A DNA stretch of 64,000 bases from Rebecca billardiae RCC1528 (GCA_965240325.2 OZ251246.1:186001-250000), one strand, 5' to 3'. Numbered from the stretch's first letter, positions 1-47,393 are shown. The notes: a model not told the origin generated them from the sequence alone. Made by a program: numbers and translations.

Positions 1-3000
1 GGGCTCGGTGGCGGTTTTGGCCCGGGCACTGGTGGTGGCGGGCTGGGCGGCGGGCTGGGCGGCGGGCTGGGCGGAGGCGATGGCGGTGGTCGCGGGAGAG
101 GTGGAGGTGGCGAAGGTGGCGGCTCCGGCGGGGGACTAGGAGGCAACGCGGGTGGAGGGCTGGGCGGTGGTGACGGCGGCGGAGACGGCGGCGGCGTCGG
201 AGGCGGCGGGCTCGGCGGCGGCGACGGCGGCGGGGACGGCGGCGGGCTCGGCGGTGGAACCGGCGGCGGCGACGGCGGCGGTGTAGGCACAGCAGCCGGC
301 GGCGGCGGGCTCGGTGGTGGACTGGGAGGCGGGCTCGGAGGCGGGCTGGGCGGCGGCGACGGTGGCGGCGACGGCGGAAGCGCAGGCGGCGGCGAAGGTG
401 GCGGCGACGGCGGAGGCGACGGAGGCGGCAACGGCGTCTCCAGCGGTGGCGGAGGGCTCGGCGGGGGCGACGGCGGCGGCGATGGCGGCGGCACAGGCGG
501 CGGCGAGGGCGGCGGGCTCGGCGGAGGCGACGGTGGCGGCAACGGCGGCGGAGGCGATGGCGGCGGCGACGGCGGAGGCGAGGGCGGCGGGCTAGGTGGC
601 GGCGCCGGAGGTGACGGAGGCGGGAGCGGATCCGTGCGCGGCGGCGGCGGCGGCTGTGGTGGCGGGCTCGGCGGCGGAGATGGCGGTGGGGACGGAGGCG
701 GGGACGGTGGCGGCGTCGGAGGCGGCGGGCTCGGCGGTGGACGCGGTGGCGGTGAAGGCGGCGGGCTCGGCGGTGGCGACGGCGGCGGCGACGGCGGCGG
801 TGTGGGCACAGCAGCCGGCGGCGGCGGGCTCGGCGGTGGGCTTGGCGGCGGACTTGGTGGCGGGCTGGGCGGCGGCGACGGTGGCGGCGCGGGCGGCGCC
901 CCAGGCGTTGGCGAAGGTGGCGGCGACGGCGGAGGCGACGGAGGCGGCAACGGCGTCTCCAGCGGTGGCGGAGGGCTCGGCGGGGGCGACGGCGGCGGCG
1001 ATGGCGGCGGCAAAGGCGGCGGCGAGGGCGGCGGGCTCGGCGGAGGCGACGGTGGCGGCAGTGGCGGCGGCGGCGACGGCGGCGGCGACGGCGGAGGGGA
1101 AGGCGGCGGGCTAGGTGGCGGTGCCGGCGGCGACGGAGGCGGGAACGGATCCGTGCGCGGCGGCGGCGGCGGCTGTGGTGGCGGGCTCGGCGGCGGAGAC
1201 GGCGGCGGGGACGGAGGCGGGGACGGTGGCGGCGCCGGAGGCGGCGGACTCGGCGGTGGACGCGGTGGCGGTGAAGGCGGCGGGCTCGGCGGTGGCGACG
1301 GCGGCGGCGACGGCGGCGGTGTTGGCACAGCAGCCGGCGGCGGCGGGCTCGGCGGTGGGCTTGGCGGCGGGCTTGGTGGCGGGCTGGGCGGCGGCGACGG
1401 TGGCGGCGCGGGCGGCGCCTCAGGCGGCGGCGAAGGTGGCGGCGACGGCGGAGGCGACGGAGGCGGCAACGGCGTCTCCAGCGGTGGCGGAGGGCTCGGC
1501 GGGGGCGAAGGCGGCGGCGATGGCGGCAGCAAAGGCGGCGGCGAGGGCGGCGGGCTCGGCGGCGGAGACGGTGGCGGCACCGGCGGCGGCGGTGACGGCG
1601 GCGGCGACGGCGGAGGCGAAGGCGGCGGCGAAGGCGGCGGCGCCGGCGGCGACGGAGGCGGGAACGGATCCGTGCGAGGCGGCGGCGGCGGCTGTGGTGG
1701 CGGGCTCGGCGGCGGAGATGGCGGCGGGGACGGCGGCGGGGACGGTGGCGGCGTTGGAGGCGGCGGGCTCGGCGGCGGACGCGGTGGCGGTGAAGGCGGC
1801 GGGCTCGGCGGTGGCGACGGCGGCGGCGACGGCGGCGGTGTAGGCACAGCAGCCGGCGGCGGCGGGCTCGGTGGTGGGCTGGGCGGCGGGCTTGGTGGCG
1901 GGCTGGGCGGCGGCGACGGTGGCGGCGCGGGCGGCGCCTCAGGCGGCGGCGAAGGTGGCGGCGACGGCGGAGGCGACGGAGGCGGCAACGGCGTCTCAAG
2001 TGGTGGCGGAGGGCTCGGCGGGGGCGAAGGCGGCGGCGATGGCGGCAGCAAAGGCGGCGGCGAGGGCGGCGGGCTCGGCGGCGGAGACGGTGGCGGCACC
2101 GGCGGCGGCGGTGACGGCGGCGGCGACGGCGGAGGCGAAGGCGGCGGCGAAGGCGGCGGCGCCGGCGGCGACGGAGGCGGGAATGGATCCGTGCGAGGCG
2201 GCGGCGGCGGCTGTGGTGGCGGGCTCGGCGGCGGAGATGGCGGCGGGGACGGCGGCGGGGACGGTGGCGGCGTTGGAGGCGGCGGGCTCGGCGGCGGACG
2301 CGGTGGCGGTGAAGGCGGCGGGCTCGGCGGTGGCGACGGCGGCGGCGACGGCGGCGGTGTAGGCACAGCAGCCGGCGGCGGCGGGCTCGGTGGTGGGCTT
2401 GGCGGCGGGCTTGGTGGCGGGCTGGGCGGCGGCGACGGTGGCGGCGCGGGCGGCGCCTCAGGCGGCGGCGAAGGTGGCGGCGACGGCGGAGGCGACGGAG
2501 GCGGCAACGGCGTCTCAAGTGGTGGCGGAGGGCTCGGCGGGGGCGAAGGCGGCGGCGATGGCGGCGGCAAAGGCGGCGGCGAGGGCGGCGGGCTCGGCGG
2601 CGGAGACGGTGGCGGCACCGGCGGCGGCGGCGACGGCAGCGGCGACGGCGGAGGCGAAGGCGGCGGCGAGGGCGGCGGCGCCGGCGGCGACGGAGGCGGG
2701 AATGGATCCGTGCGCGGCGGCGGCGGCGGCTGTGGTGGCGGGCTCGGCGGCGGAGATGGCGGCGGGGACGGCGGCGGGGACGGTGGCGGCGCCGGAGGCG
2801 GCGGACTCGGCGGTGGACGCGGTGGCGGTGAAGGCGGCGGGCTCGGCTGTGGCGACGGCGGCGGCGACGGCGGCGGTGTTGGCACAGCAGCCGGCGGCGG
2901 CGGGCTCGGCGGTGGGCTTGGCGGCGGGCTTGGTGGCGGGCTGGGCGGCGGCGACGGTGGCGGCGCGGGCGGCGCCTCAGGCGGCGGCGAAGGTGGCGGC

Positions 3001-6000
3001 GACGGCGGAGGCGACGGAGGCGGCAACGGCGTCTCCAGCGGTGGCGGAGGGCTCGGCGGGGGCGAAGGCGGCGGCGATGGCGGCAGCAAAGGCGGCGGCG
3101 AGGGCGGCGGGCTCGGCGGCGAAGACGGTGGCGGCACCGGCGGCGGCGGTGACGGCGGCGGCGACGGCGGAGGCGAAGGCGGCGGCGAAGGCGGCGGCGC
3201 CGGCGGCGACGGAGGCGGGAATGGATCCGTGCGAGGCGGCGGCGGCGGCTGTGGTGGCGGGCTCGGCGGCGGAGATGGCGGCGGGGACGGCGGCGGGGAC
3301 GGTGGCGGCGTTGGAGGCGGCGGGCTCGGCGGCGGACGCGGTGGCGGTGAAGGCGGCGGGCTCGGCGGTGGCGACGGCGGCGGCGACGGCGGCGGTGTAG
3401 GCACAGCAGCCGGCGGCGGCGGGCTCGGTGGTGGGCTTGGCGGCGGGCTTGGTGGCGGGCTGGGCGGCGGCGACGGTGGCGGCGCGGGCGGCGCCTCAGG
3501 CGGCGGCGAAGGTGGCGGCGACGGCGGAGGCGACGGAGGCGGCAACGGCGTCTCAAGTGGTGGCGGAGGGCTCGGCGGGGGCGAAGGCGGCGGCGATGGC
3601 GGCGGCAAAGGCGGCGGCGAGGGCGGCGGGCTCGGCGGTGGAGACGGTGGCGGCACCGGCGGCGGCGGGGACGGCGGCGGCGACGGCGGAGGCGAAGGCG
3701 GCGGCGAGGGCGGCGGCGCCGGCGGCGACGGAGGCGGGAACGGATCCGTGCGCGGCGGCGGCGGCGGCTGTGGTGGCGGGCTCGGCGGCGGAGACGGCGG
3801 CGGGGACGGAGGCGGGGACGGTGGCGGCGCCGGAGGCGGCGGACTCGGCGGTGGACGCGGTGGCGGTGAAGGCGGCGGGCTCGGCGGTGGCGACGGCGGC
3901 GGCGACGGCGGCGGTGTTGGCACAGCAGCCGGCGGCGGCGGGCTCGGCGGTGGGCTTGGCGGCGGGCTTGGTGGCGGGCTGGGCGGCGGCGACGGTGGCG
4001 GCGCGGGCGGCGCCTCAGGCGGCGGCGAAGGTGGCGGCGACGGCGGAGGCGACGGAGGCGGCAACGGCGTCTCCAGCGGTGGCGGAGGGCTCGGCGGGGG
4101 CGAAGGCGGCGGCGATGGCGGCAGCAAAGGCGGCGGCGAGGGCGGCGGGCTCGGCGGCGGAGACGGTGGCGGCACCGGCGGCGGCGGTGACGGCGGCGGC
4201 GACGGCGGAGGCGAAGGCGGCGGCGAAGGCGGCGGCGCCGGCGGCGACGGAGGCGGGAACGGATCCGTGCGAGGCGGCGGCGGCGGCTGTGGTGGCGGGC
4301 TCGGCGGCGGAGATGGCGGCGGGGACGGCGGCGGGGACGGTGGCGGCGTTGGAGGCGGCGGGCTCGGCGGCGGACGCGGTGGCGGTGAAGGCGGCGGGCT
4401 CGGCGGTGGCGACGGCGGCGGCGACGGCGGCGGTGTAGGCACAGCAGCCGGCGGCGGCGGGCTCGGTGGTGGGCTGGGCGGCGGGCTTGGTGGTGGGCTG
4501 GGCGGCGGCGACGGTGGCGGCACGGGCGGCGCCTCAGGCGGCGGCGAAGGTGGCGGCGACGGCGGAGGCGACGGAGGCGGCAACGGCGTCTCCAGCGGTG
4601 GCGGAGGGCTCGGCGGGGGCGACGGCGGCGGCGATGGCGGCGGCGACGGCGGCGGCGAGGGCGGCGGCGAGGGTGGTGGCGACGGTGGCGGCACCGGCGG
4701 CGGCGGCGACGGCGGCTGCGACGGCGGAGGCGAAGGCGGCGGCGAGGGCGGCGGCGCCGGCGGCGACGGAGGCGGGAATGGATCCGTGCGCGGCGGCGGC
4801 GGCGGCTGTGGTGGCGGGCTCGGCGGCGGAGACGGCGGCGGGGACGGCGGCGGGGACGGTGGCGGCGTTGGAGGCGGCGGGCTCGGCGGCGGACGCGGTG
4901 GCGGTGAAGGCGGCGGGCTCGGCGGTGGCGACGGCGGCGGCGACGGCGGCGGTGTAGGCACAGCAGCCGGCGGCGGCGGGCTCGGTGGTGGGCTGGGCGG
5001 CGGGCTCGGTGGTGGGCTGGGCGGCGGGCTTGGTGGTGGGCTGGGCGGCGGCGACGGTGGCGGCGCGGGCGGCGCCTCAGGCGGCGGCGAAGGTGGCGGC
5101 GACGGCGGAGGCGACGGAGGCGGCAACGGCGTCTCCAGCGGTGGCGGAGGGCTCGGCGGGGGCGACGGCGGCGGCGATGGCGGCGGCGACGGCGGCGGCG
5201 AGGGCGGCGGCGAGGGTGGTGGCGACGGTGGCGGCACCGGCGGCGGCGGCGACGGCGGCGGCGACGGCGGAGGCGAAGGCGGCGGCGAGGGCGGCGGCGC
5301 CGGCGGCGACGGAGGCGGGAATGGATCCGTGCGCGGCGGCGGCGGCGGCTGTGGTGGCGGGCTCGGCGGCGGAGACGGCGGCGGGGACGGCGGCGGGGAC
5401 GGTGGCGGCGTTGGAGGCGGCGGGCTCGGCGGCGGACGCGGTGGCGGTGAAGGCGGCGGGCTCGGCGGTGGCGACGGCGGCGGCGACGGCGGCGGTGTAG
5501 GCACAGCAGCCGGCGGCGGCGGGCTCGGTGGTGGGCTGGGCGGCGGGCTCGGTGGTGGGCTGGGCGTCGGGCTTGGTGGTGGGCTGGGCGGCGGCGACGG
5601 TGGCGGCGCGGGCGGCGCCTCAGGCGGCGGCGAAGGTGGCGGCGACGGCGGAGGCGACGGAGGCGGCAACGGCGTCTCCAGCGGTGGCGGAGGGCTCGGC
5701 GGGGGCGACGGCGGCGGCGATGGCGGCGGCACAGGCGGCGGCGACGGCGGCGGCGAAGGCGGTGGCGACGGTGGCGGCACCGGCGGCGGCGGCGACGGCG
5801 GCGGAGACGGCGGAGGCGAAGGCGGCGGCGAGGGCGGCGGTGCCGGCGGCGACGGAGGCGGGAACGGATCCGTGCGCGGCGGCGGCGGCGGCTGTGGTGG
5901 CGGGCTCGGCGGCGGAGATGGCGGCGGGGACGGCGGCGGGGACGGTGGCGGCGTTGGAGGCGGCGGGCTCGGCGGCGGACGCGGTGGCGGTGAAGGCGGC

Positions 6001-9000
6001 GGGCTCGGCGGTGGCGACGGCGGCGGCGACGGCGGCGGTGTAGGCACAGCAGCCGGCGGCGGCGGGCTCGGTGGTGGGCTTGGCGGCGGGCTTGGTGGCG
6101 GGCTGGGCGGCGGCGACGGTGGCGGCGCGGGCGGCGCCTCAGGCGGCGGCGAAGGTGGCGGCGACGGCGGAGGCGACGGAGGCGGCAACGGCGTCTCCAG
6201 CGGTGGCGGAGGGCTCGGCGGGGGCGACGGCGGCGGCGATGGCGGCGGCGACGGCGGCGGCGACGGCGGCGGCGAAGGCGGTGGCGACGGTGGCGGCACC
6301 GGCGGCGGCGGCGACGGCGGCGGAGACGGCGGAGGCGAAGGCGGCGGTGAGGGCGGCGGTGCCGGCGGCGACGGAGGCGGGAATGGATCCGTGCGCGGCG
6401 GCGGCGGCGGCTGTGGTGGCGGGCTCGGCGGCGGAGACGGCGGCGGGGACGGCGGCGGGGACGGTGGCGGCGTTGGAGGCGGCGGGCTCGGCGGCGGACG
6501 CGGTGGCGGTGAAGGCGGCGGGCTCGGCGGTGGCGACGGCGGCGGCGACGGCGGCGGTGTAGGCACAGCAGCCGGCGGCGGCGGGCTCGGTGGTGGGCTT
6601 GGCGGCGGGCTTGGTGGCGGGCTGGGCGGCGGCGACGGTGGCGGCGCGGGCGGCGCCTCAGGCGGCGGCGAAGGTGGCGGCGACGGCGGAGGCGACGGAG
6701 GCGGCAACGGCGTCTCCAGCGGTGGCGGAGGGCTCGGCGGGGGCGACGGCGGCGGCGATGGCGGCGGCGACGGCGGCGGCGACGGCGGCGGCGAAGGCGG
6801 TGGCGACGGTGGCGGCACCGGCGGCGGCGGCGACGGCGGCGGAGACGGCGGAGGCGAAGGCGGCGGTGAGGGCGGCGGTGCCGGCGGCGACGGAGGCGGG
6901 AATGGATCCGTGCGCGGCGGCGGCGGCGGCTGTGGTGGCGGGCTCGGCGGCGGAGACGGCGGCGGGGACGGCGGCGGGGACGGTGGCGGCGTTGGAGGCG
7001 GCGGGCTCGGCGGCGGACGCGGTGGCGGTGAAGGCGGCGGGCTCGGCGGTGGCGACGGCGGCGGCGACGGCGGCGGTGTAGGCACAGCAGCCGGCGGCGG
7101 CGGGCTCGGTGGTGGGCTGGGCGGCGGGCTTGGTGGTGGGCTGGGCGGCGGCGACGGTGGCGGCACGGGCGGCGCCTCAGGCGGCGGCGAAGGTGGCGGC
7201 GACGGCGGAGGCGACGGAGGCGGCAACGGCGTCTCCAGCGGTGGCGGAGGGCTCGGCGGGGGCGACGGCGGCGGCGATGGCGGCGGCGACGGCGGCGGCG
7301 AGGGCGGCGGCGAGGGTGGTGGCGACGGTGGCGGCACCGGCAGCGGCGGCGACGGCGGCGGCGACGGCGGAGGCGAAGGCGGCGGCGAGGGCGGCGGCGC
7401 CGGCGGCGACGGAGGCGGGAATGGATCCGTGCGCGGCGGCGGCGGCGGCTGTGGTGGCGGGCTCGGCGGCGGAGACGGCGGCGGGGACGGCGGCGGGGAC
7501 GGTGGCGGCGTTGGAGGCGGCGGGCTCGGCGGCGGACGCGGTGGCGGTGAAGGCGGCGGGCTCGGCGGTGGCGACGGCGGCGGCGACGGCGGCGGTGTAG
7601 GCACAGCAGCCGGCGGCGGCGGGCTCGGTGGTGGGCTGGGCGGCGGGCTCGGTGGTGGGCTGGGCGGCGGGCTTGGTGGTGGGCTGGGCGGCGGCGACGG
7701 TGGCGGCGCGGGCGGCGCCTCAGGCGGCGGCGAAGGTGGCGGCGACGGCGGAGGCGACGGAGGCGGCAACGGCGTCTCCAGCGGTGGCGGAGGGCTCGGC
7801 GGGGGCGACGGCGGCGGCGATGGCGGCGGCGACGGCGGCGGCGACGGCGGCGGCGAAGGCGGTGGCGACGGTGGCGGCACCGGCGGCGGCGGCGACGGCG
7901 GCGGAGACGGCGGAGGCGAAGGCGGCGGCGAGGGCGGCGGTGCCGGCGGCGACGGAGGCGGGAACGGATCCGTGCGCGGCGGCGGCGGCGGCTGTGGTGG
8001 CGGGCTCGGCGGCGGAGATGGCGGCGGGGACGGCGGCGGGGACGGTGGCGGCGTTGGAGGCGGCGGGCTCGGCGGCGGACGCGGTGGCGGTGAAGGCGGC
8101 GGGCTCGGCGGTGGCGACGGCGGCGGCGATGGCGGCGGTGTAGGCACAGCAGCCGGCGGCGGCGGGCTCGGTGGTGGGCTGGGCGGCGGGCTTGGTGGCG
8201 GGCTGGGCGGCGGCGACGGTGGCGGCGCGGGCGGCGCCTCAGGCGGCGGCGAAGGTGGCGGCGACGGCGGAGGCGACGGAGGCGGCAACGGCGTCTCCAG
8301 CGGTGGCGGCGGGCTCGGCGGGGGCGACGGCGGCGGCGATGGCGGCGGCAAAGGCGGCGGCGAGGGCGGCGGCGACGGCGGCGGCGACGGTGGCGGCACC
8401 GGCGGCGGCGGCGACGGCGGCGGCGACGGCGGAGGCGAAGGCGGCGGGCTAGGTGGCGGTGCCGGCGGCGACGGAGGCGGGAATGGATCCGTGCGCGGCG
8501 GCGGCGGCGGCTGTGGTGGCGGGCTCGGCGGCGGAGACGGCGGCGGGGACGGCGGCGGGGACGGTGGCGGCGTTGGAGGCGGCGGGCTCGGCGGCGGACG
8601 CGGTGGCGGTGAAGGCGGCGGGCTCGGCGGTGGCGACGGCGGCGGCGACGGCGGCGGTGTAGGCACAGCAGCCGGCGGCGGCGGGCTCGGTGGTGGGCTG
8701 GGCGGCGGGCTTGGTGGTGGGCTGGGCGGAGGCGACGGTGGCGGCGCGGGCGGCGCCTCAGGCGGCGGCGAAGGTGGCGGCGACGGCGGAGGCGACGGAG
8801 GCGGCAACGGCGTCTCCAGCGGTGGCGGAGGGCTCGGCGGGGGCGACGGCGGCGGCGATGGCGGCGGCGACGGCGGCGGCGACGGCGGCGGCGAAGGCGG
8901 TGGCGACGGTGGCGGCACAAGCGGCGGCGACGACGGCGGCGGAGACGGCGGAGGCGAAGGCGGCGGTGAGGGCGGCGGTGCCGGCGGCGACGGAGGCGGG

Positions 9001-12000: not shown

Positions 12001-14200
12001 GGCGGCGACGGCGGCGGTGTAGGCACAGCAGCCGGCGGCGGCGGGCTCGGTGGTGGGCTGGGCGGCGGGCTCGGCGGCGGGCTGGGCGGCGGCGACGGTG
12101 GTGGCGCAGGCGGAAGCGCAGGCGGCGGCGAAGGTGGCGGCGACGGCGGAGGCGACGGAGGCGGAAACGGCGTCTCCAGCGGTGGCGGAGGGCTCGGCGG
12201 GGGCGACGGCGGCGGCGATGGCGGCGGCAAAGGCGGCGGCGTGGGCGGCGGCGAGGGTGGTGGCGACGGTGGCGGCACCGGCGGCGGCGGCGACGGCGGT
12301 GGGGACGGCGGAGGCGAAGGCGGCGGCGAGGGCGGCGGCGCCGGCGGCGACGGAGGCGGGAATGGATCCGTGCGCGGCGGCGGCGGCGGCTGTGGTGGCG
12401 GGCTCGGCGGCGGAGACGGCGGCGGGGACGGCGGCGGGGACGGTGGCGGCGTTGGAGGCGGCGGGCTCGGCGGCGGACGCGGTGGCGGTGAAGGCGGCGG
12501 GCTCGGCGGTGGCGACGGCGGCGGCGACGGCGGCGGTGTTGGCACAGCAGCCGGCGGCGGCGGGCTCGGCGGTGGGCTGGGCGGCGGGCTTGGTGGTGGG
12601 CTGGGCGGCGGCGACGGTGGCGGCGCGGGCGGCGCCTCAGGCGGCGGCGAAGGTGGCGGCGACGGCGGAGGCGACGGAGGCGGCAACGGCGTCTCCAGCG
12701 GTGGCGGAGGGCTCGGCGGGGGCGACGGCGGCGGCGATGGCGGCGGCGACGGCGGCGGCGAAGGCGGCGGCGAAGGCGGTGGCGACGGTGGCGGCACCGG
12801 CGGCGGCGGCGACGGCGGCGGCGACGGCGGAGGCGAAGGCGGCGGGCTAGGTGGCGGCGCCGGCGGCGACGGAGGCGGGAACGGATCCGCGCGCGGCGGC
12901 GGCGGCGGCTGTGGTGGCGGGCTCGGCGGCGGAGATGGCGGCGGGGACGGCGGCGGGGACGGTGGCGGCGTTGGAGGCGGCGGGCTCGGCGGCGGACGCG
13001 GTGGCGGCGAAGGCGGCGGGCTCGGCGGTGGCGACGGCGGCGGCGATGGCGGCGGTGTAGGCACGGCAGCCGGCGGCGGCGGGCTCGGTGGTGGGCTGGG
13101 AGGCGGGCTTGGTGGCGGACTGGGCGGCGGCGAAGGTGGCGGCGCGGGCGGAAGCGCAGGCGGCGGCGAAGGTGGCGGCGACGGCGGAGGCGACGGCGGC
13201 GGCAGCGGCGTATCCAGCGGAGGTGGCGGGCTCGGCGGGGGCGACGGCGGCGGGGACGGCGGCGGCGCAGGTGGCGGCGTCGGAGGCGGGCTCGGCGGAG
13301 GCGACGGTGGCGGAACCGGCGGCGGCGGCGAAGGCGGTGGCGACGGCGGAGGCGACGGCGGCGGGCTCGGTGGCGGCGCCGGCGGCGACGGAGGCGGGAA
13401 GGGCGCTAGGCGCGGAGGCGGCGGCGGCTGTGGTGGCGGGCTCGGCGGCGGAGATGGCGGTGGTGACGGCGGCGGTGAAGGTGGCGGCGTCGGAGGCGGC
13501 GGGCTCGGCGGCGGCGACGGCGGTGGTGACGGCGGTGGTGTTGGCACAGCCACTGGCGGTGGCGGGCTCGGCGGCGGACTTGGTGGCGGGCTCGGTGGCG
13601 GGCTCGGCGGCGGCGCCGGCGGCGCGCTGGGCGGCGGCGACGGTGGCGGGGACGGTGGCGGCGACGGTGGCGGCGAGGGAGGCGGGCTGGGAACGCCTGA
13701 AATTGGTGGTGGGCTTGGCGGTGGCAGTGGCGGTGGTGCCGGTGGCAGGGCCGGCGGCGGCGAGGGAGGCGGGGATGGCGGGGGAGTTGGCAAGGGAGGC
13801 GGGCTTGGCGGGGGCGACGGCGGCGGGCTCGGCGGTGGCGATGGCGGCTGCGACGGTGGTGGCGAAGGCGGAGGGGCAGGCGGCGGGGACGGAGGCGGCG
13901 TGGGTCCCGGCGGCGGGGACGGTGGCGGGGTGGGCGGTGGGCTGGGCGGCGGAGCCGGGGCAGGGGGAGGCGATGGCGGCGGCGATGGCGGCGGCAATGG
14001 CGGTGGCTGCGGCGGTGGCGAAGGGGGCGGCACCGGAGGCAACGGTGGCGGCGATGGAGGCGGCGATGGCGGTGGGGATGGTGGTGGCGACGGCGGTGGC
14101 ACAGGTGGCGGGGCGGGCGGCGCCGCCGGAGGCGGCGGACTCGGCGGTGGCGTCGGAGGCGGCGGCGACGGCGGCGGCAGCGGTGGCGGTGGCAGCGGAG
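1..14200 (-). repeat. Coding tandem array 1: 519-bp (173-aa) unit, ~24 copies plus degenerate flanks
   Basis: Marker GGATCC (within the RTDPF codons) at 628, 1147, 1666, 2185, 2704, 3223, 3742, 4261, 4780, 5323 ... 12364, 12883. Spacing is 519 or 543, once 741. The unit is SPPP runs punctuated by QPPPPPRTDPF, PAAVPTP and PLETPLP. Confidence 0.95.
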
Positions 14201-23200: not shown

Positions 23201-26200
23201 GCGGGCTCGGCGGAGGGCTCGGCGGAGGCAATGGCGGAGGCAACGGCGGCGGCGATGGCGGAGGCGCCGGCACGCCAACAGGCGGCGGGCTCGGCGGCGG
23301 GCTCGGCGGTGGGCTCGGCGGTGGGCTCGGCGGCGGCGACGGCGGCGGCGACGGCGGCGGCGACGGCGGTGGCGACGGAGGCGGTGATGGAGGCGGCGTC
23401 GGCGCACCTGCTGCCGGCGGAGGGCTCGGTGGCGGAGACGGCGGCGGGCTCGGTGGCGGGCTCGGCGGAGGGCTCGGTGGTGGGCTCGGTGGTGGGCTGG
23501 GCGGCGAAGCCGGCGGCGGCGACGGTGGCGGTGATGGCGGCGGCGACGGTGGCGGCGCCGGCGGCGGTGGCGACGGTGGCGGCGATGGCGGAGGGCTCGG
23601 TGGCGGCGAGGGCGGTGGCGACGGCGGCGGCGACGGCGGTGGCGACGGCGGCGGCGAGGGCGGCGGAGCCGGCGGCGACGGAGGCGGGAACGGATCTGTG
23701 CGAGGTGGCGGTGGCGGCTGCGGCGGTGGGCTTGGCGGAGGCGACGGAGGTGGGCTCGGCGGCGGCGACGGCGGAGGGCTGGGAGGCGGTGGCGACGGCG
23801 GCGGGCTCGGCGGAGGGCTCGGGGGAGGCAATGGCGGAGGCAACGGCGGCGGCGATGGCGGAGGCGCCGGCACGCCAACAGGTGGCGGGCTCGGCGGCGG
23901 GCTCGGCGGTGGGCTCGGCGGTGGGCTCGGCGGTGGGCTCGGCGGTGGGCTCGGCGGTGGGCTCGGCGGCGGCGACGGCGGCGGCGACGGCGGCGGCGAC
24001 GGCGGTGGCGACGGAGGCGGTGATGGAGGCGGCGTCGGCGCACCTGCTGCCGGCGGTGGGCTCGGTGGCGGAGACGGCGGCGGGCTCGGTGGCGGGCTCG
24101 GCGGAGGGCTCGGTGGTGGGCTCGGTGGTGGGCTGGGCGGCGAAGCCGGCGGCGGCGACGGTGGCGGTGATGGCGGCGGCGACGGTGGCGGCGCCGGCGG
24201 CGGTGGCGACGGTGGCGGCGATGGCGGAGGGCTCGGTGGCGGCGAGGGCGGTGGCGACGGCGGCGGCGAGGGCGGTGGCGACGGCGGCGGCGAGGGCGGC
24301 GGAGCCGGCGGCGACGGAGGCGGGAACGGATCTGTGCGAGGTGGCGGTGGCGGCTGCGGCGGTGGGCTTGGCGGAGGCGACGGGGGTGGGCTCGGCGGCG
24401 GCGACGGCGGAGGGCTGGGAGGCGGTGGCGACGGCGGCGGGCTCGGCGGAGGGCTCGGGGGAGGCAATGGCGGAGGCAACGGCGGCGGCGATGGCGGAGG
24501 CGCCGGCACGCCAACAGGCGGCGGGCTCGGCGGCGGACTCGGCGGTGGGCTCGGCGGTGGGCTCGGCGGTGGGCTCGGCGGTGGGCTCGGCGGCGGCGAC
24601 GGCGGCGGCGACGGCGGCGGCGACGGCGGTGGCGACGGAGGCGGTGATGGAGGCGGCGTCGGCGCACCTGCTGCCGGCGGTGGGCTCGGTGGCGGAGATG
24701 GCGGCGGGCTCGGTGGCGAGCTCGGCGGAGGGCTCGGTGGTGGGCTCGGTGGTGGGCTGGGCGGCGAAGCCGGCGGCGGCGATGGTGGCGGTGATGGCGG
24801 CGGCGACGGTGGCGGCGCCGGCGGCGGTGGCGACGGTGGCGGCGATGGCGGAGGGCTCGGTGGCGGCGAGGGCGGTGGCGACGGCGGCGGCGACGGCGGT
24901 GGCGACGGCGGCGGCGAGGGCGGCGGAGCCGGCGGCGACGGAGGCGGGAACGGATCTGTGCGAGGTGGCGGTGGCGGCTGCGGCGGTGGGCTTGGCGGAG
25001 GCGACGGAGGCGGGCTTGGCGGCGGCGACGGCGGAGGGCTGGGAGGCGGTGGCGACGGCGGAGGGCTCGGCGGAGGGCTCGGGGGAGGCAATGGCGGAGG
25101 CAACGGCGGCGGCGATGGCGGAGGCGCCGGCACGCCAACAGGCGGCGGGCTCGGCGGCGGACTCGGCGGTGGGCTCGGCGGTGGGCTCGGCGGCGGGCTC
25201 GGCGGCGGCGACGGCGGCGGCGACGGTGGCGGCGACGGCGGTGGCGACGGAGGCGGTGATGGAGGCGGCGTCGGCGCACCTGCTGCCGGCGGTGGGCTCG
25301 GTGGCGGAGACGGCGGCGGGCTCGGTGGCGGGCTCGGCGGAGGGCTCGGTGGTGGTGACGGGGGTGGGCTGGGCGGCGAAGCCGGCGGCGGCGACGGTGG
25401 CGGTGATGGCGGCGGCGACGGTGGCGGCGCCGGCGGCGGTGGCGACGGTGGCGGCGATGGCGGAGGGCTCGGTGGCGGCGAGGGCGGTGGCGACGGCGGC
25501 GGCGACGGCGGTGGCGACGGCGGCGGCGAGGGCGGCGGAGCCGGCGGCGAGGGAGGCGGGAACGGATCTGTGCGAGGTGGCGGTGGCGGCTGCGGCGGTG
25601 GGCTTGGCGGAGGCGACGGAGGCGGGCTTGGCGGCGGCGACGGCGGAGGGCTGGGAGGCGGTGGCGACGGCGGCGGGCTCGGCGGAGGGCTCGGGGGAGG
25701 CAATGGCGGAGGCAACGGCGGCGGTGATGGCGGAGGCGCCGGCACGCCAACAGGCGGCGGGCTCGGCGGCGGGCTCGGCGGCGGACTCGGCGGTGGGCTC
25801 GGCGGTGGGCTCGGCGGCGGGCTCGGCGGCGGCGACGGCGGCGGCGACGGTGGCGGCGACGGCGGTGGCGACGGAGGCGGTGATGGAGGCGGCGTCGGCG
25901 CACCTGCTGCCGGCGGTGGGCTCGGTGGCGGAGACGGCGGCGGGCTCGGTGGCGGGCTCGGCGGAGGGCTCGGTGGTGGTGACGGGGGTGGGCTGGGCGG
26001 CGAAGCCGGCGGCGGCGACGGTGGCGGTGATGGCGGCGGCGACGGTGGCGGCGCCGGCGGCGGTGGCGACGGTGGCGGCGATGGCGGAGGGCTCGGTGGC
26101 GGCGAGGGCGGTGGCGACGGCGGCGGCGACGGCGGTGGCGACGGCGGCGGCGAGGGCGGCGGCGCCGGCGGCGACGGAGGCGGGAACGGATCTGTGCGAG

Positions 26201-29200
26201 GTGGCGGTGGCGGCTGCGGCGGTGGGCTTGGCGGCGGTGACGGGGGCGGACGCGGCGGCGGCGACGGCGGCAGGCTCGGCGGTGGTGGCGATGGTGGCGG
26301 GCTTGGAGGAGGGCTCGGCGGTGGCGACGGAGGTGGGCTCGGCGGCGGAGACGGCGGCGGGGATGGCGGCGGCGTGGGCGTGCCCACTGCTGGCGGTGGG
26401 CTCGGTGGCGGAGACGGTGGCGGGCTCGGCGGCGGGCTCGGCGGAGGGCTCGGCGGTGGGCTCGGTGGTGGGCTGGGCGGCGAAGCCGGCGGCGGCGACG
26501 GTGGCGGTGTTGGCGGCGGCGACGGTGGCGGCGCCGGCGGCGGTGGCGACGGTGGCGGCGATGGCGGAGGGCTCGGTGGCGGCGAGGGCGGTGGCGACGG
26601 CGGTGGCGACGGCGGTGGCGACGGCGGCGGCGAGGGCGGCGGCGCCGGCGGCGACGGGGGCGGGAACGGATCTGTGCGAGGTGGCGGTGGCGGCTGCGGC
26701 GGTGGGCTTGGCGGAGGCGACGGAGGCGGGCTCGGCGGCGGCGACGGCGGCGGGCTGGGAGGCGGTGGCGACGGCGGCTGGCTCGGCGGCGGGCTCGGCG
26801 GGGGCGACGGAGGTTGGCTCGGCGGCGGCGACGGCGGTGGCGACGGCGGCGGTGATGGAGGCGGCGTCGGCGCACCTGCTGCCGGCGGTGGGCTCGGTGG
26901 CGGAGACGGCGGCGGGCTCGGTGGCGGGCTCGGCGGAGGGCTCGGTGGTGGGCTCGGTGGTGGGCTGGGCGGCGAAGCCGGCGGCGGCGACGGTGGCGGT
27001 GATGGCGGCGGCGACGGTGGCGGTGGCGTCGGTGGCGGCGATGGCGGAGGGCTCGGCGGCGGCGAGGGCGGAGGCGACGGCGGCGAAGACGGCGGCGGCG
27101 ATGGCGGAGGTGACGGTGGCGGTGCTGGCGGCGACGGAGGCGGGAACGGATCCGTGCGCGGCGGCGGCGGCGGCTGTGGTGGCGGGCTCGGCGGCGGTGA
27201 CGGAGGTGGGCTCGGCGGCGGCGACGGCGGTGGCGACGGCGGCGGCGGCGAAGGTGGCGGGCTTGGTGGCGGCGACGGCGGCGGGCTTGGCGGCGGGCTC
27301 GGCGGTGGCGACGGTGGTGGCGACGGCGGCGGAGACGGTTGTTCGTCAGGTGGCGGGCTCGGCGGTGGGCTCGGTGGAGGGCTTGGTGGTGGGCTTGGTG
27401 GAGGCGAAGGCGGAGGCTGTGGCGGCGAAGCCGGCGGCGGCGACGGTGGCGGTGATGGCGGCGGAGACGGTGGCGGAGACGGTGGCGGCAACGGCGCAGG
27501 CGGCGGGCTGGGGGGAGGGCTGGGTGGCGGGCTCGGCGGCGGGCTCGGCGGCGGCGACGGCGGCGGCACCGGAGGCGGCGACGGCGGCGGCGTCGGCGGC
27601 GGCGACGGCGGAGGCGAAGGCGGCGGCGCGGGCGGCGACGGCGGCGGGAACGGCTCGGCGCGCGGCGGTGGCGGCGGCAGCGGCGGTGGGCTTGGTGGCG
27701 GCGACGGTGGCGGGCTGGGAGGCGGGCTCGGCGGGGGGGATGGTGGCGGCGGGCTTGGCGGTGGGCTCGGTGGCGGCCTCGGCGGCGGGCGCGGCGGTGG
27801 GCTTGGCGGCGGGCTCGGCGGCGGAGACGGCGACGACGACGGCGGTGGGCTTGGCGGTGGCCGAGGCGGTGGGCTTGGCGGCGGGCTCGGCGGTGAGCGC
27901 GGCGGCGGTGACGGCGGCGGGCTCGGTGGCGGGCCCGGCGGCGGGCTTGGCGGCGGCGGGCTCGGTGGCGGGCTTGGCGGCGGGCTCGGCGGCGGCGATG
28001 GCGGCGGCGATGGCGGCGGCGCCGGCGGCGGCGACGGCGGCGGAGAGGGCGAGGCCGACGGCGGCGGGCTCGGCGGCGGGCTCGGCGGCGGGACCGGCGG
28101 CGGAGATGGCGGCGGGCTCGGCGGCGGTGGGCTCGGCGGCGGGCTCGGAGGCGGGCTCGGCGGTGGACCGGGTGGTGGAGACGGCGGCGCGCTCGGCGGT
28201 GGGGACGGGGGCGGCGTCGGCTGCGGCGACGGCGGCGGGCTTGGCGGCGGTGAGGGCGGCGGGCTGGGCGGTGGTGACGGCGGCAGGCTTGGCGGCGGGC
28301 TTGGCGGTGGACGCGGTGGTGGGCTCGGCGGCGGGACCGGCGGCGGCGGGCTCGGCGGCGGGCTCGGAGGCGGGCTCGGCGGTGGACCGGGCGGTGGAGA
28401 CGGTGGCGGGCTCGGCGGTGGGGACGGGGGCGGGCTCGGCGGAGCCGACGGCGGCGGAGACGGGGGCGGCGTCGGCTGCGGCGACGGCGGCGGGCTTGGC
28501 GGCGGTGAGGGCGGCGGGCTGGGCGGTGGTAACGGCGGCGGGCTTGGCGGCGGGCTTGGCGGTGGACGCGGTGGTGGGCTCGGCGGCGGGACCGGCGGCG
28601 GCGGGCTCGGCGGCGGGCTCGGAGGCGGGCTCGGCGGTGGACCGGGCGGTGGAGACGGTGGCGGGCTCGGCGGTGGGGACGGGGGCGGGCTCGGCGGAGC
28701 CGACGGCGGCGGAGACGGGGGCGGCGTCGGCTGCGGCGACGGCGGCGGGCTTGGCGGCGGCGAGGGCGGCGGGCTGGGTGGTGGTGACGGCGGCGGGCTC
28801 GGCGGCGGGCTGGGCGGTGGACGCGGTGGCGGGCTCGGTGGCGGGAACGGCGGGGGCGGGCTCGGCGGTGGAGACGGCGGCGGACTCGGCGGCGGTGATG
28901 GCGGCGGGCTGGGTGGCGGGCTTGGCGGTGGGCTCGGCGGCGCGCGCGGCGGTGGGCTCGGCGGCGGCGACGGCGGCGGCGACGGCTGCGGCGGGGGCGG
29001 CGATGGCGGCGGGCTCGGCGGCAGCGACGGCGGCGGGCTCGGCGGCGGCGACGGCGGCGGGCTCGGCGGCGGAGCGGGCGGCGGCGACGGCGGCGGGCTC
29101 GGCGGCGGGCTCGGCGGTGGCGGGCTCGGCGGCGGGCTCGGCGGCGGGCTCGGCGGCGGGGAGGGCGGCGGGCTCGGCGGCGGAGTGGGCGGCGGGATGG

Positions 29201-32200
29201 GCGGTGGGCTCGGTGGCAGGCTCGGCGGCGGGCTCGGCGGCGGCGACGGCGGCGGCGACGGTTGCGGCGGGGGCGGCGAGGGCGGCGGGCTCGGCGGCGG
29301 AGATGGCGGCGGGCGCGGCGGCGGGGACGGTGGCGGGCTCGGTGGCGGGCTGGGTGGCGGCGACGGCGGCGGCGACGGCGGAGGGCTCGGCGGCGGCGGC
29401 GAGGGCGGCGGGCTGGGTGGCGGGCTCGGCGGCGGCGACGGCGGCGCGCTCGGCGGCGGGCTCGGCGGCGGGCTCGGCGGCGGGCTCGGCGGCGGGCTCG
29501 GCGGCGGGCTCGGCGGCGGGCTCGGCGGCGGGCTCGGCGGCGGGCTCGGCGGCGGCGACGGCGGCGGCGACGGCTGCGGCGGGGGCGGCGAAGGCGGCGG
29601 GCTCGGCGGCGGGCTCGGCGGCGGACTCGGCGGGGGCGACGGCGGCGGGGCCGGCGGCGGGCTCGGCGGCGGCGACGGCGGCGGGCTCGGCGGTGGGCTC
29701 GGCGGCGGCGGGCTTGGCGGCGGGCTCGGCGGCGGGCTCGGCGGCGGCGACGGCGGCGGCGACGGCGGCGGCGCGGGCGGCGGGCTCGGCGGCGGCGACG
29801 GCGGCGGGCTCGGCGGCGGGCTCGGCGGCGGCGACGGCGGCGGCGACGGCTGCGGCGGGGGCGGCGACGGCGGCGGGCTCGGCGGCGGCGAAGGCGGCGG
29901 GCTCGGCGGCGGCGACGGCGGCGGGCTCGGCGGCGGCGACGGCGGCGGCGACGGCGGCGGTGACGGCGGCGGGCTCGGCGGGGGCGGGCTCGGCGGCGGG
30001 CTCGGCGGCGGCGACGGCGGCGGGCTCGGCGGCGGTGAGGGCGGCGGGCGCGGCGGCGGGCTCGGCGGCGGGCTCGGCGGCGGCGACGGCGGCGGCGGGC
30101 TCGGCGGCGGGCTCGGCGGTGGCGACGGCGGCGGCGACAGCGGCGGCGAAGGTGGTGGCGACGGCGGCGCAGCCGGGGGCAAGGAGGGCGGCGGCGGCGA
30201 CGGCGGCGGGGACGGCGGCGGGGAGGGCGGTGGGCTGGGCGGCGGCGACGGCGGCGGCGGCGACGGCGGCGGGCTCGGCGGCGGGCTCGGCGGCGGGCGC
30301 GGCGGCGGCGACGGCGGCGGGCTGGGCGGCGGGCTCGGCGGCGGGCGCGGCGGCGGCGACGGCGGCGGGCTCGGCGGAGGCGACGGCGGCGGCGGGCTCG
30401 GCGGCGGCGACGGCGGCGGGCGCGGCGGCGGCGACGGCGGCGGGCGCGGCGGCGGCGACGGCGGCGGCGACGGCGGCGACGGCGGCGGGCTCGGCGGCGG
30501 CGACGGCGGCGGGCTCGGCGGCGGCGACGGCGGCGGGCTCGGCGGCGGCGACGGCGGCGGGCTCGGCGGCGGCGGGCTCGGCGGCGGCGACGGCGGCGGC
30601 GACGGCGGCGGCGACGGCGGCGGGCTCGGCGGCGGCGGGCTCGGCGGCGGGCTCGGCGGCGGGAACGGCGGCGGCGGCGACTCGAGCACGTCCGCGCAGC
30701 AGCGCACGTAGATCCCGCCCGCCGATCCCTCGAACCGGCACTTGTTCGGCTCCGCGTCGTCGTCGTCCCAGGTCTCGTAGCCCTGCGGCAGCGCGAGGCG
30801 CGCGGCGGCGCGGCGCAGCGTGGCGGTTGCGCAGGCACGCGCACGCGCGGCGTCACGCGGCGCGCGGGCGCGCGCGCCTCGCGCTGGCCGCTCGGGCGCT
30901 CGCTCGCTCGCGGGCGGGCGGCGGGGCGGCGCGCGCGCGCGCGCACCTGGTCGCCCTCAGGCTCGCAGTTTGTCCCGGCGCAGTCGCAGCGGTCGGACGC
31001 CCAGACGCGGAGGTTGTCGTACGAGCAGCCCGAGCCCTGCGCGACGCCAAAGCGCAGCTCGTCGAGGGTGCACAGCCGCGCGCCGATGGTCTCGCAGAAG
31101 TCGAAGGCGCCGCCCGTGCCGATCGCCGCGCGCGTGCCCGAGCACGCCGACGGCGAGCCGTAGTAGATGCCCACGTCAGTACGCGCGCACACCAGCGGGT
31201 GGCTTGTGCTGTTGCCAAAGGTCCACGCGGCCTCGGTCGTGACGCCGAGCTCGGCGCACGAGCGGTTGGAGCGGACGATGGGCGGCGAGGGCGGGGTGGG
31301 CGGCGGCGGCGCGGGCGGCGGGCTGGGCGGCGGCGAGGGCGGCGGCGCAGGCGGCGGGCTCGGCGGCGGCGTCGGCGGCGGCGTCGGCGGCGGCGGGCTC
31401 GGCGGCGGCGACGGCGGCGCGGGCGGCGGCGTCGGCACGACGCGCGGCGGCGGCGGCGGGCTCGGCGGCGGCGCGGGCGGCGGCGGCGACGGCGGCGGCG
31501 CTGGCGGCGCCCCGGGCGGCGGGCTCGGCGGCGGGCTCGGCGGCAGCGCAGGCGGCGGGCTCGGCGGCGGGAACGGCGGCGGCGGCGACTCGAGCACGTC
31601 CGCGCAGCAGCGCACGTAGATCCCGCCCGAAGATCCCTCGAACCGGCACTTGTTCGGCTCCGCGTCGTCGTCGTCCCAAGTCTCGTAGCCCTGGTGGCGC
31701 GGCGACGCGGCGGCGCGGGCGCGCGGGCGCGCGCGGGCTCAGCGGCGGCGTGGGCGCGCGCGCAGATCGGCGGCGTCCGCGCGCTCGCGCGCGGCCGCGC
31801 GCGCGGAGCTGCGCGCGCGCGCGCGCACCTGGTCGCCCTCAGGCTCGCAGTTTGTCCCGGCGCAGTCGCAGCGGTCGGACGCCCAGACGCGGAGGTTGTC
31901 GTACGAGCAGCCCGAGCCCTGCGCGACGCCAAAGCGCAGCTCCTGCAGCGTGCACAGCCGCGCGCCGATGGTCTCGCAGAAGTCGAATGCGCCGCCCGTG
32001 CCGATCGCCGCGCGCGTGCCCGAGCACGGGTCGGGCGAGCCAAAGTACGTGCCCACGTCAGTACGCGCACACACCAGTGGGAAGCCGGAGGCGTTGCCGA
32101 AAGACCACGCGGCCTCGGTGGTGACGGCGAGCTCGGCGCACGAGCGGTTGGACTTGACGACGGGGGCGAGCGGCGGGCTGGGCGGCGGGCTGGGCGGCGG

Positions 32201-33272
32201 CGCGGGCGGCGGCGGGCTCGGCGGCGGCGACGGCGGCGGGCTCGGCGGCGGGCTCGGCGGCGGCGACGGCGGCGGGCGTGGCGGCGGCGACGGCGGCGAT
32301 GCCGGCGCGGGCGGCGGCGGCGGAGACTCGAGCACGTCTGCGCAGCACCGCACGTAGATCCCACCCGACGCGCCCTCGAAGCGGCACTTGTTCGGCTCGG
32401 CGTCGTCGTCGTCCCAGGTCTCGTAGCCCTGCGGCGGCGCGCGCGCGGCGGCAGGGGCGCGCGGCGCGCGGCGCGGCGGCGGAGCGACGCGACGCGGTCG
32501 GCCGGCCGGCGCGGGCGCGCGGGGCGCGGGGCACGTGCGGCCGGTCACGCGCGCGCGGCGAGGGCGCGCGCGCGCGCGCGGCAGCAGCAAGGGCGGGCGG
32601 CACGACGCCGCCGCCGCGCCGACGCACCTGGTCGCCCGGATCCGAGCAGCTCGCGCCGGCGCAGTCGCAGCGGTCGGACGCCCAGACGCGGAGGTTGTCG
32701 TATTCGTTGCAGCCCGAGCCCTGCGCGATGCCGTCGCGCAGCTCCTGCAGCGTGCACAGCCGCGCGCCGATGGCCTCGCAGAAGTCGAACGCGCCGCCCG
32801 TGCCGATGGCCGGGCGCGTCCCCGAGCACTCGGACGGCGCGCCGTAGTAGATGCCCACGTCGGTGCGCGCGCACACCAGCGGGTAGCTCGAGTTGCCAAA
32901 CGACCACGCCGACTCGGTCGAGACGGCGAGCTCGGCGCAGGACTTGTTGGAGATCGCGTGCGCCGTGGGCGAGGCGAGCAGCGCGAGGAGGAGCGTCAGC
33001 GCGTGCGCCGGCCCGGAGCCGCCGCTCGCCGTGCGCACGGCAGTCGTCGGGCGCGGTGCGGCGCGGTCGGCGGCAGCGGCCTGGCCGTGCGCTGCGTCGT
33101 CAGCGCGCGACCCGTGCTCGCACGAGTCGCGCATCTTGCGGGGCCCAGCGGGACGGGCCCTCGGAGGTGATGTCGCGGGGCTGGCCGCGCGCGAGCGCGC
33201 CGGCCAAAGCGGCGACGTGGGCGGCGACGCGCCGCACGCCGCGTGGGCGGCGTGCTTGCGCAGGCGCCCCAT
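1..33272 (-). CDS. Giant secreted/surface proline-rich protein (>=10,900 aa, 3' end outside window): 3 Cys-rich modules, Ser-Pro3 rod, TMEM132-like cohesin/Ig block, cohesin, dockerin, second Ser-Pro3 rod
   Basis: Exons 33272-32628 (alternative ATG 33134), 32428-31829, 31690-30947 and 30782-<1, joined by three phase-0 GT..AG introns; the first three exon lengths are multiples of 3. I found no stop in the last exon (codons at 3k..3k+2): the repeat arrays were checked through their antisense codons and most of 14.2-18.4 kb was hand-translated. Hydrophobic ALTLLLALLASPTAHA precedes the first module. Confidence 0.88.
14640..14820 (-). other. Dockerin-like module (duplicated Ca-binding loop-helix) within the giant protein
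   Basis: Reads GDVNGDCALTSFDVRVLSQFVIG...LDPTLDNSTGAQDVQYLLRAVAGKYRF, matching the GDxNxDxxxxxxD / DxxxDxxxxxxD dockerin pattern. Confidence 0.7.
14960..15345 (-). other. Second cohesin-like domain within the giant protein
   Basis: Reads DVDLGSASGLQFQQSGNSLTVPVRVNTGGGSEYLVNFQIELAIDSAVL, resembling the cohesin TVPV.v....l..fq..l.yD..vL pattern. Confidence 0.6.
15350..18390 (-). other. TMEM132-like ectodomain block (cohesin-like domain followed by Ig-like beta-sandwiches)
   Basis: Motifs appear in TMEM132 order: PVFAGDSFDLVMYAHTGGVALITWQINIAYNSSVL, GWLAYVASGELVNTAPLSG, VPLRVWHPLSAEI, C...FQSTTASLVASF...NVDVT. Composition is S/T/V/A/G-rich and beta-like. Confidence 0.7.
18390..30680 (-). repeat. 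Coding tandem array 2 (~4,100 aa of Ser-Pro3): 13 RTDPF-marked units of 480-636 bp plus an irregular SPPP region (27700-30680)
   Basis: GGATC markers at 19936, 20572, 21196, 21820, 22456, 23092, 23692, 24328, 24952, 25564, 26188, 26668, 27148. All spacings are multiples of 12 bp. Confidence 0.93.
30687..32950 (-). repeat. Three copies of a ~140-aa, 12-Cys module (C-type-lectin/Link-fold-like) separated by short Pro linkers
   Basis: Each copy reads SN(K/R)SCAEL..PLVCARTDVG..CSGTR..AFDFCE.IGARLCTL.EL..GSGC.YDNLRVWASDRCDCAG..C...GDQ|GYETWDDDDAEPNKCRFEG..GGIYVRCCADV. Confidence 0.85.
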
Positions 33273-47263: not shown

Positions 47264-47393
47264 GCTTTAGCCCGGGTCAGAAGCGGGGCCGCGCGCCATC
47301 GTGCGGACTGCGGAGTGAAGTGCCACGCGGGTGCCAGTGCATCACGGCAGTGATGACTACCCGACAGTTTAGTTGATCAGCAATCGGCGCAGC

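Follow-up and report, generated by a model that had tools for sequence, protein, structure and literature searches.

We analyzed a 64,000-nucleotide (nt) stretch of the genome of Rebecca billardiae RCC1528 (GCA_965240325.2 OZ251246.1:186001-250000), referred to here in its full length as the window, in which a single very large gene occupies the minus strand from position 33272 to beyond position 1. A four-exon model of this gene contains 10,923 codons inside the window (215 + 200 + 248 + 10,260) and reads, in order, through three cysteine-rich modules (the heads), a long Ser-Pro-rich array (rod A), a folded hub and a second such array (rod B). This layout bears out a preliminary description of the locus, which had proposed one gene of at least 10,900 amino acids (aa) with the same order of parts, and the sizes that we measured, 4,084 aa for rod A, 1,409 aa for the hub and at least 4,728 aa for rod B, are close to the ~4,100, ~1,400 and at least 4,700 aa given there. 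At the edge of the window (position 1), the frame is still open and still within rod B. Judging from its sequence, the segment from 33272 to <1 is very probably the 5' part, at least 33.3 kb long, of a protein-coding minus-strand gene that is translated through its arrays.

The first three exons encode most of the head region. Exon 1 (32628..33272, on the minus strand, as are all features of the gene given below; 215 aa) begins at ATG 33272 and includes a signal-like stretch, ALTLLLALLASPTAHA, followed by the N-terminal part of head module 1. Intron 1 (32429..32627; 199 nt, GTGCGT..CAG, phase 0) separates it from exon 2 (31829..32428; 200 aa), which comprises the C-terminal part of head 1 (GYETWDDDDAEPNKCRFEG..VRCCADV), a 55-aa SPPP spacer and the N-terminal part of head 2; after intron 2 (31691..31828; 138 nt, GTGCGC..CAG, phase 0), exon 3 (30947..31690; 248 aa) continues with the C-terminal part of head 2, an SPPP spacer of ~100 aa and the N-terminal part of head 3. 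Beyond intron 3 (30783..30946; 164 nt, GTGCGC..CAG, phase 0) lies exon 4 (1..30782), whose 10,260 codons (at least 30,780 nt) are free of stops up to position 1, where the exon leaves the window. Its first segment, the C-terminal part of head 3 (GYETWDDDDAEPNKCRFEG..CCADVLES; 30666..30782), reads directly into rod A. Neither intron 1 nor intron 3 has a length divisible by 3, and intron 2 contains an in-frame TGA, so that splicing is required; excision of each of the three GT-AG introns restores one frame (3/3 cases), and the intron position is identical in all three head modules, at the ..GDQ / GYETW.. codon boundary.

In a six-frame scan, the minus-strand frame runs without a stop from 30956 to 3, that is, through 10,318 codons, and its translation yields, in order, 58 intron-like residues, GYETWDDDDAEPNKCRFEG...CCADV, rod A, the hub and rod B. 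The claim that this frame is open from a splice acceptor at 30782 past position 1 thus held: the acceptor AG ends at 30783, and no stop follows. There are no runs of N within 1-33272; the sole one in the window, a 100-N scaffold gap at 46803-46902, lies outside the gene. At the other end of the model, two candidate start codons, ATG 33272 and ATG ~33134, are followed only ~88 and ~43 residues later, respectively, by the hydrophobic segment, in which ALTLLLALLASPTAHA / I presents, by sequence inspection, an AHA-type cleavage motif. Because this segment is far from both ATGs, the start codon and the signal peptide of the model are tentative. Upstream of the start, a 37-nt tandem repeat (6 copies, 98% matches) is located at 34422-34643, ~1.2 kb from the ATG, and an AT-richer patch lies between the two at ~33480-33700.

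The gene is missing from the list of open reading frames (ORFs) for the window, as had been noticed in the preliminary description, because the list leaves out any ORF that extends past the end of the source sequence; in its place, the list shows decoys in other frames. Those over the arrays extend to 4,000-4,700 codons, at 1-14253 (+), 18355-30708 (+), 18944-31738 (-) and 19508-33436 (+), and such frames are a pitfall for annotation by ORFs or by the ratio of non-synonymous to synonymous substitutions (dN/dS).

The two rods account for most of the protein inside the window. Rod A (18414..30665; 4,084 aa) is 72% Pro and 20% Ser, mainly as Ser-Pro3, and rod B (1..14186; at least 4,728 aa), which continues past the window edge, is 71% Pro and 16% Ser. 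Together, the rods contain 1,310 SP3 and 159 SP4 motifs, with Ser plus Pro making up 88-91% of the residues; Tyr, Cys, Lys and Trp are all absent from rod A, and the 8,812 residues of both rods include 0 Tyr and 2 Lys. Both rods are punctuated by RTDPFPPP, which recurs each 160-212 aa in rod A and each 173, 181 or 247 aa in rod B, a spacing of ~50-65 nm if the chain is a polyproline-II (PPII) helix. Rod B is built of at least 17 higher-order units of 173 aa that share 96% nucleotide identity, along with variants of 181 and 247 aa, and this near-identity implies that the arrays grew through recent tandem duplication; by the same token, array lengths may differ between strains. At 0.31 nm per residue, the extended lengths are ~1.27 µm for rod A and at least 1.47 µm for rod B, consistent with the ~1.3 µm and at least 1.5 µm proposed in the preliminary description, and the per-residue figure matches published measurements (PMC11015965).

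The guanine plus cytosine (GC) content of the window is ~68-70% in ordinary sequence and rises to 82-88% over 1-14000 and 18000-32000, where the plus strand also has a strong G-over-C skew. In the rods themselves, GC is 83%, and two minus-strand and two plus-strand frames are open in addition; since other frames on both strands are open there, we dropped the open frame as coding evidence in the rods and turned to codon usage and to the variation among array units. Pro is encoded in both rods by CCG (4,331), CCA (1,084), CCT (592) and CCC (292), with positions 1-2 fixed as CC, whereas Ser comes from two codon families, TCN and AGY, chiefly TCG (726) and AGC (593). Among the 17 equal 173-aa units of rod B, differences fall at codon positions 1, 2 and 3 in the proportion 20/36/170, and pairwise codon differences are synonymous in 1,949 cases and non-synonymous in 420, compared with 93:2,242 and 182:2,120 when the same units are read in the shifted frames. 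Rod A units follow the same codon-position pattern. Length differences among the higher-order units of both rods are always whole codons, and the lowest Ser plus Pro content in any 30-residue rod window is 62%, so that the frame never slips across 8,812 codons. The pattern of variation indicates that the rods carry protein-level constraint, and the SPPP rods named in the preliminary description were upheld as extensin-type arrays by both the SP3 count and the bias toward codon position 3.

Between the rods lies the hub (14187..18413; 1,409 aa), with a GC of ~70% (GC1/GC2/GC3 of 0.60/0.56/0.92), 16 Cys and 11 N-X-S/T sequons. Just one frame is open over the entire hub, another minus-strand frame being open for the last ~500 nt alone, and we estimate that 1,409 stop-free codons would arise by chance at the hub composition with p ~1e-12. 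No start or stop codon marks the boundaries of the hub, and the frame continues on both sides. The AlphaFold2 model, computed from a 36-sequence alignment, has a mean predicted local distance difference test (pLDDT) score of 86.6, in line with the earlier proposal of a folded hub, and contains no intron-like insertions. It is an unbroken chain of beta-sandwiches that leads, via a disordered stretch (965-986) and a short helical domain, to one last beta-sandwich, in all ~11 beta-sandwich domains and a dockerin-like helical pair.

The N-terminal portion of the hub resembles TMEM132. This TMEM132-like part (16290..17804), consisting of a cohesin and tandem immunoglobulin (Ig) domains, includes a Pfam match to PF16070 (Ig_TMEM132_4th; 38.5 bits against a cut-off of 27, E 1.1e-9), and residues 1-505 of the model align with residues ~240-800 of TMEM132A-E (Foldseek E 1e-23 to 1e-25, probability 1.00). 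The top Foldseek match of the hub model is the scaffoldin CbpA, and cellulosome scaffoldins match too, while the Foldseek search of the PDB returned generic Ig-array matches alone, for instance, gp210 and S-layer proteins. The TMEM132-like part gives way to further Ig domains, then to a cohesin-like and a dockerin-like domain and finally to rod B, with no transmembrane (TM) helix or cytosolic tail at this place. The hub family profile matches Big_2 domains (LigA/LigB) at positions 636-739. A second cohesin-like domain (14955..15323) was recognized through the match, albeit weak (E ~0.008), of the family profile to solved cohesins at 828-878; in the Diacronema relative, residues 837-946 match Pfam Cohesin with E 6e-10. 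Between this domain and the dockerin is a disordered polybasic linker (SRRRA ... RARRL; 14835..14942), which harbors the sole stretch of the model with pLDDT <50 (residues 965-986); most of the 36 aligned members of the hub family, from haptophytes to green algae, likewise carry polybasic RRR/RRxL motifs here, and the linker may be a processing site. The dockerin-like domain (14631..14828) contains two Ca-loop-like motifs, GDVNGDCALTSFDV and DPTLDNSTGAQDV, that is, two D-x-N/T-x-D loops; the family profile matches solved type I dockerins at positions 981-1058 (E 4e-6 to 1e-3), whereas the window's own dockerin scores 14.5 bits with Pfam Dockerin_1, below the cut-off of 22.9. As modeled, then, the hub is a TMEM132-like cohesin/Ig array that passes into Ig domains of the Big_2 type, after which come a second cohesin-like domain, the basic linker, a dockerin-like domain and, at the C-terminal end, a beta-sandwich.

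A HMMER search with 1,200 hub residues retrieved 678 proteins at E <=1e-3, including 161 at E <=1e-30, and many of these relatives are themselves giants of 4,000-7,800 aa with 2-4 copies of the module. The best named relatives are from Prymnesium parvum (KAL1521827), Diacronema lutheri (KAG8459670; 43% identity) and Pavlovales sp. CCMP2436, and next after the haptophytes come the green algae Cymbomonas and Mesostigma. None of the 678 proteins is near-identical to the hub: identity is at best 43% when the full length is aligned and 69% for a fragment of 285 aa, and the gene therefore seems to be absent from public protein sets. The general plan of the gene recurs in a metagenomic protein of 2,761 aa (P0021), which combines a head, Pro/Thr-rich linkers, a hub, a Pro-rich linker and a C-terminal hydrophobic segment, and whose head is homologous to those of the Rebecca giant (local phmmer E 2e-7) and ends in the same VRCCADV. 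This layout implies that the head-spacer-hub-spacer-anchor plan is a family trait, in which the Rebecca giant stands out by its extreme spacers; the giant rods are either lineage-specific or else dropped by gene callers in other species. In Diacronema lutheri KAG8459670, two hub modules abut at ~1190-1210 with no spacer, an arrangement that may be real or may reflect loss of a Pro-rich array from the gene model. No PKD-type anchors were found in three of the hub relatives: the C-terminal parts of two giants carry TNFR-type Cys repeats or cadherins, and the flanks of the third relative hold a PT repeat only. Our search of a limited literature collection returned nothing on cohesin-dockerin or TMEM132-like giants in haptophytes.

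The three Cys-rich head modules (33272-30684) are each ~145 aa long with 10 Cys and are 80-94% identical to one another. The head module had no Pfam match at E up to 1, nor up to 10, and no homologue in a word-index homologue search; the head module of a relative gave chance matches only against PDB sequences. AlphaFold prediction for exon 2, which, by joining a C-terminal part, a spacer and an N-terminal part, is a natural circular permutant of the head, reached a pLDDT of 47.9. In the ESM Atlas, the head module falls among unnamed haptophyte clusters (score 0.92), and lower-scoring leads were DUF7495, Xlink, Lcl_C, InvE_AD, FGE-sulfatase and Lectin_C, which we take to be largely families with C-type-lectin-like folds. 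The lectin-like nature of the heads asserted in the preliminary description thus found no backing in the Pfam, PDB sequence or word-index searches, its leads coming from the language model only, and a C-type-lectin-like adhesion fold is a weak lead.

In what we consider the probable, although by no means assured, interpretation, the gene encodes an extracellular giant of the hydroxyproline-rich glycoprotein (HRGP) type: a glycosylated PPII tether or axial thread with adhesive heads and docking nodes. By analogy with the Chlamydomonas mastigoneme protein MST3, the Ser-Pro3 arrays would be hydroxylated and O-glycosylated into stiff PPII rods of ~1.3 µm and at least 1.5 µm, which would either act as spacers or form the axial thread of a fibril on the cell surface or flagellum, with the Cys-rich heads placed at the distal tip. 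The cohesin/dockerin node would provide a docking point for further copies or partner proteins, and the base would be membrane-held by sequence downstream of the window. The analysis establishes how the gene is built, that its rods are constrained as coding sequence, and to which fold, family and relatives the hub belongs; the expression, modification, rigidity, location, binding partners and anchor of the giant are inferred.

Several observations weigh against this interpretation. Pro-rich runs reach at most 264 aa in the predicted proteins of the top 150 relatives of the hub; the signal-like segment lies ~43-88 residues downstream of the candidate ATGs, which makes the choice of start codon tentative; the head fold received no assignment from Pfam, the PDB sequence search or AlphaFold; and the rods, being devoid of Tyr, cannot form plant-type extensin cross-links. 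The single sequencing run containing the hub yielded contigs of ~150 nt at a depth of 2-5 that cover parts of the hub only; these contigs show 0 indels and are silent on junctions and strand. The apparent "joints" spanning the hub in the contigs of this run were discarded as repeat-to-repeat artefacts, with sides of merely 21-34 nt. The conserved polybasic linker may signify that the product is cut rather than maintained as a single polypeptide. Finally, the arrays show a synonymous excess in the antisense Gly-rich frame as well (2.4-3.1, as opposed to 3.3-4.8 in sense), since the variable N of a CCN codon coincides with that of GGN. For this reason, we dropped the synonymous to non-synonymous ratio alone as proof of strand. 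The sense strand is favored because TCG and AGC both encode Ser (Asp and Leu in antisense), because the hub is continuous with the rods, which read into the head on one side and into the hub on the other in frame with no splice needed, and because the linkers that flank the hub in the relatives are Pro-rich, not Gly-rich.

Among the alternatives, one that we regard as unlikely concerns the fate of the chain rather than its existence. The product could be a self-assembling polyprotein: cleavage at the conserved RRR/RRxL motifs that separate cohesin 2 from the dockerin would release rod units capped by a cohesin and, at the opposite end, by a dockerin, and these units would re-join non-covalently with Ca2+, the outcome being longer filaments, an extracellular lattice or a cell covering rather than a continuous tether. 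The coincidence of the model's sole disordered stretch with this linker, the polybasic motifs in most of the aligned family members, and the adjacency of a cohesin and a dockerin within one module are all compatible with such processing. However, the window's own dockerin match is under the Pfam threshold and the cohesin matches are weak, an adjacent cohesin and dockerin could as well bind in cis or engage other proteins, and cleavage, cohesin-dockerin binding and Ca2+ dependence are all putative. An elaboration of this scheme, which appears to us a long shot, casts the giant as the precursor of a "molecular rope", in which the conserved basic sites of each hub would be cleaved and the cohesin and dockerin would re-join µm-long glycosylated rods at their ends or along their sides. 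If so, one gene would give rise to a multi-µm extracellular filament or lattice that depends on Ca2+ and can be separated mechanically, as a eukaryotic parallel to the coupling in cellulosomes that is structural rather than enzyme-holding.

It is likewise rather improbable that the locus is real but its mature products are far smaller, with most of the arrays spliced out as introns or internal promoters yielding the head, hub and rods as separate proteins, such that the 10,900-aa chain is never made. The gene is known here from genomic sequence alone, the predicted proteins of the relatives lack long Pro-rich runs and the two Diacronema hubs abut, as would be expected in this case. Conversely, both arrays vary in a synonymous-biased manner and draw on two Ser codon families, which speaks for their translation in this frame, no stop is available to end a separate upstream product, and the rods join the head and the hub in frame without a splice; as for the relatives, gene callers, we infer, often mask such repeats. 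That the arrays are non-coding GC-rich satellite or an assembly artefact, with a shorter hub gene embedded, is hardly credible, because, although several frames are open on both strands, Tandem Repeats Finder detects simple periods of 9-15 nt and array units that are 96% identical are hard to assemble, the differences are distributed over the codon positions as 20/36/170, Ser is kept via the unrelated codons TCG and AGC, no frame shift occurs over 26 kb, the hub has no start or stop of its own, and 1-33272 is free of N runs.

If the gene is expressed as read, the part inside the window alone would be among the longest known polypeptides, and the principle exemplified by MST3, in which one PPII chain sets the filament length, would extend from green algae to haptophytes and from ~0.8 µm to several. 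To our knowledge, which here does not reflect a systematic comparison, no gene contains longer extensin-type arrays. The combination of the TMEM132 cohesin/Ig architecture with a dockerin-like domain in an algal surface protein offers a testable case of eukaryotic cohesin-dockerin coupling. Furthermore, as gene callers miss such genes, the surface proteomes of haptophytes are probably under-annotated.

The remainder of the window holds ordinary neighbors, namely, genes for a His_Phos_1 protein (56894-57955, minus strand), a DTW domain protein (47373-48788, plus strand) and a NAD_binding_1 protein (58371-59858, plus strand). The best named relative of the His_Phos_1 neighbor is from Diacronema lutheri (62% identity), and its own product is present in the public protein collection, which does not hold that of the giant. 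A stretch at 53616-55436 (plus strand) looked AP2/ERF-like by eye (KFKGVY..AWQAQIRIGG..HLGVYATAAEAARAYD), but Pfam returned nothing at E up to 0.001, and this candidate was set aside; a GCA trinucleotide run (54749-54848) lies beside it. The GC content of the window falls between those of Emiliania (65.7%) and Diacronema (73.25%) (PMC8379373). Together with the relative of the His_Phos_1 neighbor, this value suggests that the sequence comes from a haptophyte akin to Diacronema, of Pavlovophyceae type.

The closest known system is the mastigoneme of Chlamydomonas, which is built round one copy of MST3 (Huang et al., Cell 2024; PMC11015965). MST3 (Cre06.g309951), the axial HRGP of this structure, is 8,572 aa long; it has a signal peptide and combines a poly(Pro) region with Ig-like domains and five domains of the C-type lectin family, and the glycosylated PPII core of the protein runs the whole ~800 nm of the filament (PMC11015965). 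For the tip filaments, 146 nm was measured, where 429 residues in PPII would predict 133 nm at 0.31 nm per residue, and the base is a PKD2-like membrane domain without helix S1 that is common to seven more Chlamydomonas SIP-binding giants (PMC11015965). The search for giants of this type employed a cut-off of >2,500 poly(Pro) residues (PMC11015965), which each of the rods described here (4,084 and at least 4,728 residues) exceeds. The preliminary description knew of no protein with such an architecture, a statement that has to be withdrawn insofar as MST3 and the seven related giants share much of it (PMC11015965). Compared by description, MST3 and the haptophyte giant have in common their giant size, small Cys-containing domains spaced by poly(Pro), Ig-like domains, and gene models that are wrong in annotation versions; the signal peptide of MST3 has a signal-like segment as its putative counterpart, and a PPII core that sets the filament length and distal heads would be further common features. 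They differ in lineage, one being chlorophyte and the other haptophyte, and in the repeat, P13..P11(XXP)3 in MST3 as opposed to the Ser-Pro3 (1,310 copies) of the haptophyte giant. The latter also has two rods split by a TMEM132-like cohesin/dockerin node, which is not described for MST3, and no partner sheath protein of the MST1 type is known for it.

The chemistry of the rods is closer to that of the extensin-type HRGPs of plants and green algae (Ser-Hyp3-5, where Hyp is hydroxyproline), with which the giant shares the Ser-Pro3/4 repeats. In plants, such repeats are hydroxylated, arabinosylated and Ser-galactosylated and adopt the PPII conformation, and the design of the haptophyte giant can be likened to that of the sexual agglutinins of Chlamydomonas, which combine a fibrous shaft with a globular head. 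Unlike extensin-type HRGPs, in which such regions range from tens to a few thousand residues, the giant has 8,812 rod residues within the window, and folded adhesion-type domains intervene between the rods. Its rods also lack Tyr and hence isodityrosine cross-links: neither the YXY nor the VYK cross-link motif of plant extensins is possible in 8,812 rod residues with 0 Tyr, and plant-type extensin cross-linking is therefore excluded. Haptophytes are reported to possess an ExAD-like GT47 (PMC5371791), a presence that is compatible with, but no proof of, Hyp-arabinosylation of the rods.

For the hub, the relevant comparisons are with animal TMEM132 and the coherin-type cadherins of choanoflagellates and sponges, which show the same order of a cohesin followed by tandem Ig (BIG2) domains (PMC6030884). 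The TMEM132 architecture was dated to early holozoans, and vertebrates lack dockerins (Sanchez-Pulido and Ponting 2018; PMC6030884). In contrast to this dating, the hub family is abundant in haptophytes and green algae, and its module in the Rebecca giant is internal and rod-flanked; further Ig domains come after it, then a second cohesin-like and a dockerin-like domain, and no TM helix or cytosolic tail adjoins it. Bacterial cellulosome scaffoldins (CipA, CbpA) resemble the hub in its cohesin-like and dockerin-like domains, as reflected in the Foldseek and profile matches, and in the Pro/Thr-rich linkers between modules, but here the setting is eukaryotic, both putative partners are in one module, no enzymes are attached, and the linkers are three orders of magnitude longer. 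Thus, the design class, a rod on an anchor, is already known from MST3, and the haptophyte giant is new in that its rods consist of Ser-Pro3, in its scale, in the TMEM132-like cohesin/dockerin node that splits the rods, and in its lineage.

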